DNA from: Saccostrea echinata
Lineage: Eukaryota
Length of the DNA: 64,000 bases
Reading direction: 5' to 3'
Assembly: GCF_033153115.1 (NCBI RefSeq)
Contig: NW_026889806.1
Coordinates: forward strand, 5,146,001 to 5,210,000
Shown here: positions 37,601 through 43,600 of the stretch, in pieces
How positions within the stretch are numbered: the first letter of the stretch is position 1
Layout of the letters: each line of letters begins with the position of its first letter
Made by a program: the position numbers and the translations under genes
Notes under the pieces: generated by a model
What the model was told of the DNA's origin: nothing
The model's input: only the letters and a program-made list of their open reading frames with translations
The model's database searches: none

Positions 37601-40600
37601 CTGTACCCCCTTCTCTCTAGGACAAGTTATATATATTATATACATTATATTCTTCCCCTTACATCCTGAAAAACCTGCTTTTCTTCTGTATATTGTACAT
37701 TTCCTATTGTATACAGTACATTTGCTATTGTATACAGTACATTGTATATTTCTTATTGTATACAGTACATTTGCTATTGTATACAGTACATTGTACATTT
37801 GCTATTGTATACAGTACATTGTACATTTGCTATTGTATACAGTACATTGTACATTTGCTATTGTATACAGTACATTGTACATTTCCTATTGTATACAGTA
37901 CATTTGCTATTGTATAGAGTACATTGTATATTTCCTATTGTATACAGTACATTGTATATTTCCTATTGTATACAGTATATTGTATATTTCCTATTGTATA
38001 CAGTATATTGTTTATTTCCTATTGTATACAGTATATTGTTTATTTCCTATTGTATACTGTATATTTCCTATTGTATACAGTACATTGTATATTTCCTATT
38101 ACCTCTTTTTGTAGTTCTTCCTGTTCCCTGAGCAGACGTCGTCTCTCTCTTTCCAGATGTTTGGCGTCAATCCCTCCCAGTTCCTTTTCCTGCTCTTCAA
38201 TGTTCTCTTTCACTTTCTCAATGTCTTTAAGATGTCGTCGGAGTCTAAGATTGTCTGTCAATTCTCTCTCCCTCTCCTAAATATACACAATCAAGCAAAT
38301 ATTATTGCCCTTCAAACCAATAAACTTCCATACCATGCTAAAACATAGGTAATCAGAGATTACAGAGCTCACCTCAACGAACGTTGTCTTTAAGTAAGGC
38401 AAAGTCCCACACTAAACTAATTATCTAGTAGTGTCCATCCCTAGATGCAACATTTATGCAATTTTGGTCTGATAGGGCTTGCAATTACTTGGGAATAGAC
38501 TTATCTGAAAACTTAAAACTAGTCACTCATCCAGAAAATGTAAGTCAAATCCAGCATCTGAAGCAAGTTTGAGATTGTTTGTCCCTTGGTGCATCATCCA
38601 TGCAAGTTTGATTCAGATAGGCCTTATAGTTACTTGGAAATGAGATCCGCTCCAAAAACATTAACCTGGTTACTCATCTGGAAAATGTAGGTCAGATCCA
38701 GCATCCGAAGCAAGTCCAGTAGTGTGCATCCTTAGATGTATCATCCATGCAAGTTTGGTCAATATAGGGTTTATAGATACTTGGAAATGATATCTGCTCC
38801 AAAAACTTTAACCTGGTCACTCATCCGGAAAATATAGGTCAGATTCAGCATCCAAAGCAAGTCCAGTAGTCAGTATCCTTAGATGTGTCATCCATGCAAG
38901 TTTGCTCAATATAGGGCTAATAGTTACTTGGAAATGAGATCTGCTACAAAAACTTTAACCTGGTCACTCATCCGGAAAATATAGGTCAGATCCAGCATCC
39001 GAAGCAAGTCCAGTAGTGTGCATCCTTAGATGTATCATCCAAGCAAGTTTGGTCAATATAGGGCTTATAGTTACTTGGAAATGAGACCTGCTCCAAAAAC
39101 TTTAACCTGTTCCAAAAACTTTAACCTGGTCATTCTTTAGCCGAAATTGCAGCATCTGAAACCTTGACTGGTACAATGAAACACACTAGAAGCATCCTCC
39201 GTGCATCTCTGACTAATATAGGCCATAGAAGTACTTGAAAAGAAAACTGCTCCAAAAACCTTAACCTGGGACGCTGACACCGACGCCGAGGGTATTACAT
39301 AAGCTCCCTCAACTTCGTTGAGGTGAGCTTATAAAAAGGAGAAGCAAAAATAGAATGATTTTCCATCTTTCTAAGCTTTGTACATACTTCAGTAATTTTT
39401 TTTGCCAACTTATCAACTTTTGCAATCTCTTTTCTATGTACGTTTATGGGTATGTTTTGCCAGCATGTCATGTATCTTGTTCAGAAGCTCTATGGTATGT
39501 ACAGACTTTGGGTAGTTTTGGCCAGCTCATCACATAGCTAGATAAGACTACTCTATGTACAGACTTACAGTATTTTTGCAAGCTCGTTGTGAAGCTTGTT
39601 TACTCTCTATGCTATTTGAAGATTTACCATATTTTTGGCCAGCTCTTCACGTAGCTAGTTCAGACTATTCTATACAGACTTACTGTATTTTTGGCCAGCT
39701 CGTTATGTAGCTTGTTCAGACTCTCTATTCTATATACAGACTTACAGTATTTTTGGCCAGCTTGTCTCGTAGCTTGTTCAGACTCTCTATTCTATATACA
39801 AACTTACAGTATTTTTGGCCAGCTCCCTGTGTAGCTTGTTCAGACTCTCTATTCTATTCAGACTTACAGTATTTTTGGCCAGCTAGTCATGTAGCTTGTT
39901 CAGACTCTCTATTCTATACAGACTTACAGTATTTTTGGCCAGCTCATTATGTAGCTTGTTCAGACTCTCTATTCCATACAGACTTATAGTATTTTTGGCC
40001 AGCTCGTTATGTAGCTTGTTCAGACTCTCTATTCTATATACAGACTTACAGTATTTTTGGCCAGCTTGTCTCGTAGCTTGTTCAGACTCTCTATTCTATA
40101 TACAAACTTACAGTATTTTTGGCCAGCTCCCTGTGTAGCTTGTTCAGACTCTCTATTCTATTCAGACTTACAGTATTTTTGGCCAGCTAGTCATGCAGCT
40201 TGTTCAGACTCTCTATTCTATACAGACTTACAGTATTTTTGGCCAGCTCCTTGGGTAGCTTGTTCAGACTCTCTACTCTATACAAACTTACAGTATTTTT
40301 GGCCAGCTAGTTGCGTAGCTTGTTCACTCTCTATGCTATTTTCAGATTTACCATATTTTTGGCCAAGCTTGTCACATAGGTAGTTCAGACTCTCTATTCT
40401 TTACAGACTTACAGTATTTTTGGCCAAGCTCATCACGTAGCTTGTTCAGACTCTCGATTCTATTTACAGACTTACAGTATTCTTGGCCAGCTCGTTGCGT
40501 AGCTTGTTCAGACTCTCTATTCTATTTACAGACTTATAGTATTTTTGGCCAGCTCATCATGTAGCTTGTTCAGACTCTTGATTCTATTTACAGACTTACA

Positions 40601-43600
40601 GTTTTTTTGGGCAGCTTGTCGCGTAGCTTGTTCAGACTCTCTATTCTGTTTACAGACTTATGGTATTTTTGGTCAGCTCGTTGCGTAGCTTGTTCAGACT
40701 CTCGATTCCATTTACAAACTTATGGTATTTTTGGCCAGCTTGTCGCGTAGCTTGTTCAGACTCTCTAATCTGTTTACAGACTTAAGGTATTTTTGGCCAG
40801 CTCATCTCGTAGCTTGTTCAGACTCTCTATTCTGTTTACAGACTTACAGTATTTTTAGCCAGCTCATTGTGAAGCTTGTTCACTCTCTATGCTATTTTCA
40901 GATTTACCATATTTTAGGCCAAGCTTGTCACATAAGTAGTTCACACTCTCTATTCTATTTACAGACTTGCGTTTTTTTTGGCCAGTTCGTCTCGTAGCTT
41001 GTTCAGACTCTCTATTCTATTTACAGACTTACTGTATTTTTGGCCAGCCCCTTGTGTAGTTTGTTCAGACTCTCTACTCTATACAGACTTACAGTATTTT
41101 TGGCCAGCTCTTCACGTAGCTAGTTCAGACTATTCTATACAGACTTACTGTATTTTTGGCCAGCTCGTTATGTAGCTTGTTCAGACTCTCTATTCTATAT
41201 ACAGACTTACAGTATTTTTGGCCAGCTTGTCTCGTAGCTTGTTCAGACTCTCTATTCTATATACAAACTTACAGTATTTTTGGCCAGCTCCCTGTGTAGC
41301 TTGTTCAGACTCTCTATTCTATTCAGACTTACAGTATTTTTGGCCAGCTAGTCATGTAGCTTGTTCAGACTCTCTATTCTATACAGACTTACAGTATTTT
41401 TGGCCAGCTCATCATGTAGCTTGTTCAGACTCTCTATTCCATACAGACTTATAGTATTTTTGGCCAGCTCGTTATGTAGCTTGTTCAGACTCTCTATTCT
41501 ATATACAGACTTACAGTATTTTTGGCCAGCTTGTCTCGTAGCTTGTTCAGACTCTCTATTCTATATACAAACTTACAGTATTTTTGGCCAGCTCCCTGTG
41601 TAGCTTGTTCAGACTCTCTATTCTATTCAGACTTACAGTATTTTTGGCCAGCTCGTCTCGTAGCTTGTTCAGACTATTCTATACAGAATTATGGTATTTT
41701 TGGCCATCTTGTGTAGTAGCTTGTTCAGACTATTCTATACAGAATTATGGTATTTTTGGCCATCTTGTGTAGTAGCTTGTTCCGACTCTCTATTCTACAC
41801 AGACTTACAGTATTTTTGGCCAGCTCATCGCGTAGCTTGTTCAGACTCTCTGTGTAATCCCTCTGTTCCTCCTCTTTCTTCCCTGCTTTGTCCTCTATCT
41901 GGGTCAGACGCTCTTTGTTCCGTGCTAACGTTTCTGCCTTCCCTGACTGAATATAGCTGTGACAAACAGAAAGTATCAAAACAATTGTCAAATTATCAAT
42001 AACAGATAAAAGCAAACGTAAACTTTTTGTTAAGCTGTGGTTGTAAAACTTCGAATCATTTGCATTTACATATATATGCAATATGGCTAACTGTAACTTT
42101 TTAGCTGGTCGTTCAGATTTGAAGACTATGAATTTTATGGTGTTTAATACTACACTGCATATCAACAGAACAAAGCAATAATGGAGGAAACACAAACCTT
42201 TTGATTTCCAGGTTGATATTTTTTACTTTTGCTGTATCATTCTTCACTTTATCAACCTTCAATGTGAGAAACATTCCAACATTTAAAGTCAGGAAAAATC
42301 ATTTTACGTTAGATTCCATATCTGTTTCATTTTTTACCGAAACCATTGCTGGGTTCCATAGCAATAAACAGACTCATACTGCCAACATTAACATTTTGTA
42401 TGAATAACTTCAGTCACTACTCTCCAAAATTTTATAGCAGTGGGTTACGTTGGATATAAATCACCAAAATCTTATAATCAAGATTGAAAATATGGGGAAT
42501 TTGCTTCTGACAGTTAATTATACATCAAAATTACGGGACAGATCCACATGTACATATACAGGGTGTTTCAACAAACATGTCCAGACTTTAGATGTCTTCT
42601 TTTTGCACAATATTAAAATATTTACAAAATTATCACTGTATTTCATAGTCCATTTTCCGGCTATATAATTTAAGAGATGAATTTAATTTTTAAGAATTCA
42701 TGAGGACATGAACTACTACGCTTCACGCCTGCATACTGCATGAAGCGCATTAGCGCTTCAGGATAAATATGCAGGCATGAAGCATCGTGGTTCATGTACC
42801 TCATGAATTCTCAAAAATTAAATTCATATCTTATATTTGGGTGAATTAAAAAAAAATGACCACCAAACTGAATTTTTTTGGCAAAATTCAACTACTTATA
42901 ACATATTTTTCACTTATGTCATCAGATTGCAAATGCATTCTAGTTTAAAATCCTGAAGTGGCAATAGAATAGACAACTGGATTAAATAGTTTCAGAATTT
43001 TTATTAGAAAAATTTCTTTTGAAAAAAGAAAATATCATTACACCTTAAAAGACTTTCTAAAATACATAATCACAAGAAATTATAGTTTTTTATGTTTCAA
43101 AATGGTAAAAGGGGTATAAATGATTAAATCTAGACCTTGAATGAGTATCTTCTCTTGTACATGTGACAAAAAATTGGCTTTTTGATTGTTATTTTATATT
43201 ATTTTTTCAATTCTGGTTTGAAAAGTTTTAATATGAAAAAAATATGAAGCAATAAAATTCCCCAAAATTCACTTTTTTGTCCGTTCAAGTCAATTCTTTA
43301 AATCTAAGCCAAAAAAGAATTGTTATATATGAGTTCTCTTACAAAAAATACCAGATTTTGAAGTGACCCTATGTTGCATTATTGTGTTGCACTCCTGACA
43401 TCTGATATGTATTTTATTTAACATTGTTTTAAAAATTATAACACACAATAACCCGTTATTACTTTGTAAATCAATTTGTCGTGTTGATATTTTTCATCGT
43501 TTACGGCAGGTTTTTCATATTTTGAAGACCTTAATACATGATTATTTGCAAAGTGTAATATATATAAATTTTATTTAAAATAAATGTGAAATGATGAAAA

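Follow-up and report, generated by a model that had tools for sequence, protein, structure and literature searches.

A tandemly repeated exon–intron junction in RAD50 of Saccostrea echinata, probably a mirage-type minisatellite with neutral loss of decoy donors

Within the window analysed here, a 64,000-nt stretch of Saccostrea echinata DNA, a RAD50 coiled-coil exon runs into an array of copies of its own end and donor. How is the intron spliced in the presence of so many decoys, and why have the decoys nearest the real donor lost their GT? An earlier note had proposed that purifying selection inactivated the only decoy able to preserve the reading frame. The array is, we consider, probably a mirage-type minisatellite that spans the exon–intron boundary, in which the first donor is used and the pattern of GT loss reflects, most likely, neutral decay. 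Mirages are minisatellite-like tandem duplications of exon–intron boundaries, described in amphioxus for the globin genes BflGb6 and BflGb9 (PMC3087553) and for Adh3 (Canestro et al. 2002, as cited in PMC3087553).

Host gene and structure of the array

The host gene carries the zinc hook (CXXC) of RAD50 (Pfam Rad50_zn_hook at 47957–48220(-), E 9.7e-8, 32.2 bits, cut-off 24.3), an N-terminal ATPase part (62993–63286(-), matching residues 152–226 of chain 9q9h_A, E 1.8e-17) and a C-terminal ATPase part (32220–32357(-), residues 1207–1251 of the same chain, E 5.5e-21). Taken alone, the 148-nt exon matched no Pfam family and nothing beyond generic coiled coils (E above 0.3); it is part of the RAD50 transcript, with matching strand and order, and a 4076-nt contig shows it spliced to the exon that follows. 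RNA contigs over 41808–41958 are spliced at both ends of this exon, and contig pieces covering 38103–38275 of the next one occur in 4/4 runs, one of them within the 4076-nt contig. A 46-aa ORF from a relative (P0001) is 67% identical to the exon (E 1e-5) and keeps the ending ...LRDELAKNT; since it retains 12 of the last 13 residues, the repeated exon end is ancestral coding sequence.

Table. Features of the repeated RAD50 junction and its surroundings (window positions; a slash marks the exon–intron or intron–exon junction)
Feature	Position	Strand	Details
Tandem array	39450-41851	-	about 40 units, each 56-63 nt long and made of the exon end, the donor and the first part of the intron; five-unit (304-nt) higher-order period
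RAD50 coiled-coil exon	41809..41956	-	148 nt; acceptor cacag/C, donor ACT/GTAAGT; last 42 nt (41809-41850) are array unit 1
Authentic donor	41807..41808	-	ACT/GTAAGT, G at 41808; joint 38275->41808 (cut +1) in 4/4 runs
Next RAD50 exon	38103..38276	-	174 nt; both ends in phase 0; RNA contigs join it to 41809
Whole intron	38277..41808	-	3532 nt, about 2/3 of it array
147-nt tandem repeat	38427-39109		683 nt, same intron; unrelated to the donor array
Units 2 and 3, duplicate pair	41693..41808	-	donor places 41748 and 41692 read ACC/ATAATT; 4-nt deletion in unit 3
First in-frame stop, TGA	41725..41727	-	+81 from the donor, exon frame extended into the array (ORF list)
First decoy with intact GTAAGT	41631..41636	-	+172, out of frame, behind the TGA
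544-nt block, nine units	41093..41636	-	duplicated at 39628-40171
Second copy of the 544-nt block	39628..40171	-	3 mismatches in 544 against the first copy
Second RAD50 array (array A)	55329-56972		stop in frame at +2 whichever decoy is used

As in mirage-type minisatellites, the repeat runs head to tail within the gene: TRF returns a single array (period 62, 39.7 copies, 82% matches, score 2859, with a 304-nt higher-order period), and 40 units are counted when they are anchored on the exon-like part. This agrees with the description of about 40 copies of a RAD50 exon end plus donor in the earlier note. Each unit comprises the last 42 nt of the exon (14 residues), a donor and some 18–20 nt of intron, and unit 1, which consists of the last 42 exon nt, ACT/GTAAGT and 18 nt, holds the authentic junction, so that the unit spans the boundary as it does in mirages. 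The further claim of a unit of about 60 nt that can keep the frame holds for only about one-third of the units, since the 39 unit spacings are not uniformly 60 nt (60 in 14 cases, 62 in 16, 56 in four, 63 in two, and 58, 59 and 61 once each). A five-unit query against the animal's own genome gave 12 of 12 matches at the array locus.

The interior of the array has turned over recently. No more than 3 sites distinguish the two 544-nt blocks, and a near-100% match at that offset is found in the own-genome search. Mismatches to unit 1 within the 42-nt exon-like part number mostly 2–6 in the interior, 8–9 in units 2 and 3 and 10–11 in the distal units, which makes both edges the most diverged parts of the array; thus concerted evolution within the array, with its boundary units left out, is found here as in mirages. 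Units 2 and 3 carry one shared diverged haplotype. Variation is concentrated at CpG columns: of the four CGCG columns, three have the minor allele in 17–22 of 36 units and one has it once, whereas the remaining columns average 2.4. The ACC units without the donor G, four in number, all read ACC/AT, and no ACC/GT unit remains, a state which fits CpG decay in these four GT-less units.

Donor choice and the decoys

GT is present in 28 of the 39 decoys and absent from 11. Over the 9-mer 22 of the 39 are identical to the real donor, and over the hexamer 25. The two decoys nearest the real donor are both dead, with ACC/ATAATT at 41748 and 41692 where the real donor reads ACT/GTAAGT (the unit tables agree with the earlier note on this point); among the other 37, 28 have GT and 9 lack it, in keeping with its caveat that some distal copies are also without GT. 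The donor place of unit 2 lies exactly +60 from the real donor. Judged from the reading frames, a stop-free in-frame insertion would be possible only from this +60 decoy, itself without GT, and all decoys beyond it sit behind the TGA at +81; the ORF list places this stop (41725–41727), as had been stated, ahead of the first intact decoy at 41636 (+172).

The first donor is the donor used, in 4/4 runs. The joint 41809/38276, which skips 3532 nt and has CT..AC ends on the + strand, was recovered in every run in one contig each, at depths of 28–109, confirming the acceptor that the earlier note had placed at 38276. As to junctions from array donors to that acceptor, which the note had considered, the authentic joint is the only one touching the array region, and no decoy-donor joint occurs, among the 15 of 72 joints listed from the assembled contigs of the four runs (runs whose RNA label is a guess, though their contigs are spliced). 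At this level the host mRNA is spliced in the regular way, as in mirages. Given the extent of that listing, and since rare isoforms are lost when contigs are assembled, low-level use of decoys may still occur. Depth in the array bins was 0–3.4, mostly 0, in the 4 runs; a lone contig leading from the exon into the array (41697–41813, depth 2.2, 1/4 runs) ends short of the first intact decoy. Because the first donor is paired with an acceptor 3.5 kb downstream, some 28 GT-bearing decoys leave with the intron. Correct splicing past them fits first-donor choice.

Loss of GT in the proximal decoys

Does the state of the proximal decoys then reflect selection? On the reading of the earlier note, the sole decoy that would add 20 in-frame residues to the coiled coil lost its GT as harmful, while the others would be tolerated as their premature stops are cleared by NMD. 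The anatomy stands: the decoy capable of staying in frame, at +60, is among the dead ones, and the reading frame runs into the TGA at +81 before it reaches any intact decoy. The selective part is not demonstrated, with GT absent from 11 of 39 decoys, and we regard it as unlikely, though it has points in its favour. Loss in both units 2 and 3 against 9/37 later ones gives p 0.074, or 0.044 when three degenerate end units are left out, with units counted as independent. Being copies of a single diverged unit, units 2 and 3 count as one GT-loss event, with a base rate of 0.18–0.28 (as GT is lost in 11/39, the chance that one given decoy is dead is about 0.2–0.3). Moreover, they are diverged throughout, beyond the donor (8–9 mismatches in 42), and CpG decay fits their ACC/AT state; in human F7, frame-preserving pseudo-sites have been kept and are silent (PMC1557585).

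Other arrays allow a wider comparison. At least four RAD50 introns contain donor arrays; of the four seen, only that at 39450–41851 has an open read-through frame, the other three stopping at +1 or +2, and the first decoy is dead in two of the four, this array included, which speaks for selection. In array A, GT is lost in 3/4 first decoys against 3/43 later ones (p 0.005), through three different lesions, and the donor hexamer shows an excess (8/24 against 15/116, p 0.02); the excess is gone over units 2–12 (13/66 against 52/319, p 0.31), and its dead units are members of an older subfamily. Since any decoy of array A meets a stop at +2, this array lends no support to the frame-preservation argument; its proximal decoys being dead too, a weak hint of selection stays. 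In a curated set of 17 donor arrays from this genome, each anchored on an exon, GT is missing from 4/17 first decoys against 32/245 later ones (Fisher p 0.19); with 13/17 first decoys still carrying GT, proximal inactivation is not a general rule across the arrays sampled. Intact in-frame open decoys are found in 2/20 arrays in the true phase and in 4/40 in control phases, no rarer than the control frames predict. Two counter-examples are an array in thioredoxin-like exons (L050; 27-nt unit, phase 0) with 24 intact, in-frame, stop-free decoys, and one in a cadherin-like gene (L049) with one such decoy. Neutrality is thus judged on 17–20 arrays, a sample with power against a strong effect only. 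Phase 2 with an automatic stop, a setting in which no decoy could give an in-frame product, is found in 9/20 arrays. As a separate observation, dead proximal decoys recur in two of the four RAD50 arrays, in one of them with three different lesions.

We have considered, as a rather improbable conjecture, that weak selection acts in this genome on the decoys adjoining the real donor, such that in RAD50, an essential gene sensitive to dosage, the nearest decoys would compete, be costly and be knocked out by whichever lesion came first, and arrays would persist mainly where decoy use gives no in-frame product. A functional role for the array as a whole seems to us quite improbable. U1 snRNP acts in upstream exon definition and in the suppression of premature cleavage and polyadenylation, and a cluster of about 28 donor-like sites might aid exon definition, curb premature cleavage/polyadenylation in an intron rich in repeats or tune retention of the RAD50 intron. 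Such a role would accord with the 22/39 decoys identical to the real donor 9-mer, with arrays in at least four RAD50 introns and with donor-bearing arrays being 4.4- to 6.5-fold commoner genome-wide than a reversed-pattern control. Yet recent duplication, not conservation, accounts for the identity between blocks, the decay of GT is about as fast as that of other non-CpG columns, and there is no excess of the donor motif that has G at +3 (3423 against 3274). Furthermore, P0001 stops 6 codons past the donor, and for this reason offers no hint that the relative has an array in frame. That the units are small cassette exons, one 39-nt unit repeating 13 coiled-coil residues in frame, is highly improbable: on sequence grounds most units do offer ...ATAGAG/AGTCTG... 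with ACT/GTAAGT 39 nt on, and the 60-nt units are open in the frame of the exon (ORFs), but no intra-array joint is found among the 15 of 72 listed, most array bins are at depth 0 in each of the 4 runs, and the purine- and A-rich stretch ahead of the AG makes a poor pyrimidine tract. Long near-identical blocks (3 mismatches in 544) are hard to assemble; a wrong copy number or order of units can nonetheless scarcely be credited, given that a 311-nt contig from a different data set maps within the array and departs from it in a single letter, that contigs from two differently labelled organisms fall on other parts of it, and that the proximal units 1–4, which carry the finding, are distinguishable.

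For the mirage-type minisatellite that we favour, we suggest that a segment of about 60 nt straddling the junction of the coiled-coil exon and its intron was duplicated in tandem into the intron, and that the array may have grown by unequal exchange in five-unit blocks before the recent 544-nt block duplication. The first unit remains the working exon end, whose donor the spliceosome pairs with the distant acceptor, the GT decoys being removed with the intron; rare use of a decoy would bring the in-frame TGA at +81 into the transcript and probably lead to nonsense-mediated decay. The end units would escape homogenization and hence be older and more diverged, and a T-to-C change at -1 would create a CpG with the donor G, the decay of which would yield ACC/AT.

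Relation to known boundary repeats and significance

Mirages are described as leaving regular splicing undisturbed, with array boundaries that escape homogenization (PMC3087553). The RAD50 array resembles this description in that its unit spans the boundary, that many but not all copies carry the splice signal, that regular splicing is undisturbed and that the interior is homogenized to the exclusion of boundary units; it differs in size, with about 40 copies of 56–63 nt and a five-unit period where the amphioxus globins have 3–6 copies of 150–160 nt, and in the phylum of its host. The 37-bp VNTR of human F7 intron 7, whose first monomer holds the exon 7–IVS7 junction, offers a second parallel (Borensztajn et al. 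2006, PMC1557585). There too an authentic donor is followed by identical pseudo-donors (5–9, against 39 decoys in RAD50), of which the most upstream donor alone is used, as established by mutagenesis in mammalian cells; for RAD50 the same choice finds support in assembled RNA contigs. Some F7 pseudo-sites would preserve the frame, as would the +60 decoy of RAD50; those of F7 are intact, and the choice of the first donor keeps them silent, whereas the single one in RAD50 is dead. Intron gain and intron sliding through tandem duplication of a segment bearing a splice site have been discussed as a model for mirages (PMC3087553); the RAD50 array holds the same raw material, a duplicated exon part plus splice signal, and among the 15 of 72 joints listed from the contigs of four runs no decoy unit turned exon and no shifted intron was seen.

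By itself the RAD50 array changes nothing known about RAD50 or about splicing; it is most likely a further case of a known kind of repeat, another boundary minisatellite with neutral loss of GT. It does provide, at the level of RNA contigs, a non-chordate animal that splices correctly past about 28 GT-bearing decoys, 22 of which share the nine-base sequence of the real donor. Moreover, it supplies a falsifiable hypothesis of selection suited to a genome-wide census and, if weak selection on proximal decoys were true, junction minisatellites would constitute a mutagenesis screen, natural and replicated, of how 5' splice sites are chosen in a mollusc. Together with its three sister arrays in RAD50 and the four- to sixfold genome-wide excess, the array adds to an unexplained abundance of donor arrays in this genome.

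Anatomy of the RAD50 boundary array

The array that opens this RAD50 intron comprises 40 units when anchored on its exon-like part, each consisting of the last 42 nt of the exon, the donor and 18–20 nt of intron. Tandem Repeats Finder (TRF) gives a second description with a period of 304, equal to five units. A five-unit query against the oyster's own 923-Mb genome returned 12 matches, and because all of them fall at this one locus the array is not a dispersed satellite. The 39 unit spacings are 56 nt (four times), 58, 59, 60 (14 times), 61, 62 (16 times) and 63 (twice), so that the frame-keeping unit of about 60 nt described in the earlier note applies to about one-third of the units. 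Among the 39 decoys (donor places from unit 2 onward) GTAAGT stands at 25, and 22 share the whole 9-mer ACT/GTAAGT with the real donor; three carry GTAAAT and 11 have no GT (ATAAGT five times, ATAATT twice, and GCAAGT, TTAAGT, CAAAGT and CATAAA once each). Every position given in the earlier note is correct: units 2 and 3, with donor places at 41748 and 41692, read ACC/ATAATT; the read-through frame from the exon is open across unit 2 and is closed by a TGA at 41727–41725 (+81); and the first intact decoy lies at 41636 (+172), with another at 41576.

Donor arrays at RAD50 exon ends and the exon that carries the focal array
Feature	Window position	Strand	Description
RAD50 exon	41956–41809	-	ends ...GAG AGT CTG AAC AAG CTA CGC GAT GAG CTG GCC AAA AAT ACT/GTAAGT
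Focal array	41851 down to 39450	-	TRF: period 62, 39.7 copies, 82% matches, score 2859
Array A	55329–56972	-	35 nt x 47 units, RAD50 exon end + AAG/GTTAGT
Array B	46460–46983	-	19–27-nt units, RAD50 exon end + GTAAGT
Array C	63602–64000, continuing past window end (L057 10–592)	-	33-nt units

RAD50 holds three further donor arrays, A, B and C. The first decoy of array B is intact and lies only 19 nt past the real donor, the exon being of phase 2 with a read-through stop at +1; array C begins at the donor that follows the RAD50 exon ending ...FCHQEDSNW, just past the window end, and has at least 12 successive intact decoys, the first included. Read-through in A, B and C runs into a stop at +1 or +2, and all three are therefore mute on the frame-preservation argument. 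Beyond array C, at 730–3949 of the same stretch (L057), a distinct 30/60-nt array runs to about 54 copies and lacks the donor motif. The intron after the exon 38276–38103 also opens with a tandem array (37688–38100, minus strand, 28/49-nt units) abutting the donor GAG/GTAATA; its units have the bases at and after +3 in common but lack GT; none of them is therefore a decoy, and the array was left out of our counts. An array of 37 nt x 24.5 at 51628–52498, in another RAD50 intron, carries the donor motif on neither strand, and not every intronic RAD50 array is therefore junction-derived.

The exons of the host gene were searched singly. A Rad50_zn_hook match above the Pfam cut-off was found at 47957–48220 (minus strand, E 9.7e-8), and against solved RAD50 chains 62993–63286(-) aligned with residues 152–226 (E 1.8e-17) and 32220–32357(-) with residues 1207–1251 (E 5.5e-21). 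The focal exon gave generic coiled-coil matches only, at E above 0.3, consistent with its being part of the C-terminal coiled-coil arm. Its 49 residues, searched against 1.84 billion representatives at E up to 0.001, returned two hits, with no full-length RAD50 among them. One, a 46-aa open reading frame (P0001; ENA, three contigs, longest 2218), is 67% identical (E 1e-5) and reads ...[14 protein letters not shown], then six more codons, as if through a donor; on this comparison the end of the exon is old coding sequence. The other, an unrelated repeat protein at 22% identity, was set aside. The exon also occurs as a second haplotype with five substitutions (41882, 41899, 41905, 41921 and 41925), present alone in run X5 (organism B) and alongside the other form in runs X2 and X3, which points to high polymorphism, or to a pair of closely related taxa that were labelled differently. 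The interval from the RAD50 3' end to cyclin-like exons at about 15000–17200 (minus strand) contains long open frames (21788–27000, minus strand) that look by eye, from reverse-transcriptase-like sequence, like two nested or adjacent retroelement copies.

Donor use in RNA contigs

Assembled contigs from four of six sequencing runs of the region, whose label 'RNA?' is a guess, were aligned to 38001–42100. Each of the four yields a single contig in which 41809 is joined to 38276 across 3532 skipped nt, at depths of 28–109 and, in one case, over a contig of 4076 nt; the joint has CT..AC ends on the plus strand, that is, GT..AG on the gene strand. This joint marks the data as spliced RNA and shows splicing from the first donor. 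No joint from a decoy occurs among the 15 of 72 joints listed, although contigs could miss rare isoforms. Of the joints listed, the authentic one alone touches the array. Depth across the bins of the focal array is 0 to 3.4, and only one contig (41697–41813, depth 2.2, one run) extends out of the exon and into the array, ending short of the first intact decoy.

The same intron contains a tandem repeat of 147–150 nt at 38427–39109, which recurs on another contig (8456–9001 of locus L044). Its RNA-contig depth climbs to as much as about 74,000 in a single bin, where RAD50 exons stand near 100, and it has the look of a repeat family that is both dispersed and transcribed. A second, distinct 147-nt family at 513–1040 is found again at 6628–7593 of locus L051 and upstream of the array of locus L060.

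Proximal decoys and the case for selection

The earlier note proposed that the only frame-preserving decoy had been inactivated by purifying selection. The array and its dead proximal donors are as it described them; selection is a possible cause, though in our view an unlikely one. In its favour, GT is lost from both proximal decoys and from 9 of the 37 later ones (Fisher one-sided p 0.074, or 0.044 without three degenerate end units), values that count units 2 and 3 as independent when they are in fact duplicates. The two share an unusual haplotype, differing from each other mainly by a 4-nt deletion, and as a duplicate pair they have one mutational history; taken as one event, the chance of the pattern is simply the base rate of 0.18–0.28. 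Their state may also have been reached without selection. At three of the four CGCG columns of the exon-like part the minor-allele counts are 17–22 of 36 (1 at the fourth; mean of the other columns 2.4), a peak of variation that suggests CpG hypermutability. All four units with ACC at -3..-1 and a lost G read ACC/AT, and no ACC/GT units are left; a T-to-C change at -1 would create a CpG with the donor G, fast decay of which would yield ACC/AT, so that CpG decay offers a plausible mutational route to units 2 and 3. The nine-unit blocks 41636–41093 and 40171–39628 differ at 3 of 544 sites, which indicates recent block duplication. Most interior units have two to six mismatches to unit 1 in the 42-nt exon-like part, units 2 and 3 have eight and nine, and the last two aligned units 10 and 11, making the two ends the most diverged parts. 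In mirages, which are minisatellites at exon–intron boundaries, as in other tandem repeats, array boundaries are left out of homogenisation (PMC3087553), and the diverged ends seen here match that behaviour.

Array A leans towards selection. Its decoys 1–4 are GTTTGT (weakened), TTAAGT, ATAAGT and a 3-nt deletion, the last three dead by three different lesions, giving 3/4 proximal against 3/43 later (p 0.0047). The donor hexamer has 8 changes at 24 sites in the first four decoy units against 15/116 elsewhere (p 0.02, with the 3-nt deletion scored as three changes). Over units 2–12, however, the excess is gone (13/66 vs 52/319, p 0.31). These units are an older subfamily, units 13–47 a young, homogenised and nearly uniform block in which changes of every sort are scarce, and age structure accordingly explains most of the dead-proximal pattern. 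Units 3–5, 11 and 32 form one subfamily, every member of which lacks GT.

Replicate arrays were sought elsewhere in the genome. Three GTAAGT spaced 26–56 nt occur at 9273 places against 2086 in a reversed control, and with C at +7 at 2316 against 356; the variant with G at +3 is not enriched (3423 vs 3274), many of its hits being GA/GT-rich simple sequence. From the first 16 pattern places on contig 1, the stretch past the window end and the window's own arrays we curated 17 arrays whose first unit stands at the end of an open reading frame; real donors were picked by eye and the arrays then walked, except that the decoy states of L049, L050:4043 and L057 come from the curation step. Automated unit calling (12-nt anchors, three mismatches) was noisy. 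Excluded for want of a clear exon anchor were, from the first set, L048, L051, L056, L045, L044:8456 and L055:7817 and, from the second, L058 and L060; L053 has no tandem array by TRF and a short match at L045 was not picked up, so neither gave a usable donor array. Four upstream frames matched Pfam families, weakly or well, in the frame expected for them: Ras (E 2.1e-5), Cadherin (E 0.0045) and Thioredoxin twice (E 0.0068 and 0.034). The first decoy lacks GT in 4/17 arrays (the focal array, L041, L050:9383 and L046, which reads GC), the second in 2/17, and later decoys in 32/245, a difference that is not significant for the first decoy (Fisher p 0.19) or the first two pooled (p 0.31) in a sample that is small and hand-curated, and whose search pattern, by demanding three consecutive intact donors, could bias short arrays towards intact proximal decoys. 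About 30 further arrays matched by two later patterns lie outside the sample.

To the 17 arrays were added three more with an exon anchor and a period that is a multiple of three (L059, L061 and L062, used in the in-frame and phase tests and not in the first-decoy count). One or more decoys that were intact, in frame and free of stops were present in 2/20 arrays in the true phase against 4/40 in two control phases, each phase being inferred from whichever upstream open frame was longest. At L050, a gene with thioredoxin-like exons has two donor arrays on the plus strand (4043–4850 and 9383–9780). In the second, decoys 1 and 3 are dead; the first, with a 27-nt unit in phase 0, keeps 24 decoys intact, every one of them in frame, with the first stop at +813, and is a direct counter-example to the loss of in-frame decoys. 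Similarly, in human F7 pseudo-sites five and six would preserve the frame and are intact and unused (PMC1557585). As a lead rather than a result, the inferred phase of the 20 exon-anchored arrays is 2 in nine, 0 in eight and 1 in three; in phase 2 with a GTAAGT donor, read-through meets TAA at once.

Standing of the array among boundary minisatellites

The focal array is of a kind already known, that of the mirages or of the human F7 intron 7 repeat. The matches listed from open-access texts included no study of junction minisatellites in oysters or other molluscs; the sole mention of oysters was in a telomerase study, present in two versions. In the reading that we prefer and consider probable, the RAD50 array is a neutral boundary minisatellite, which would be harmless to the oyster through choice of the first donor, with nonsense-mediated decay expected to act as a backstop.
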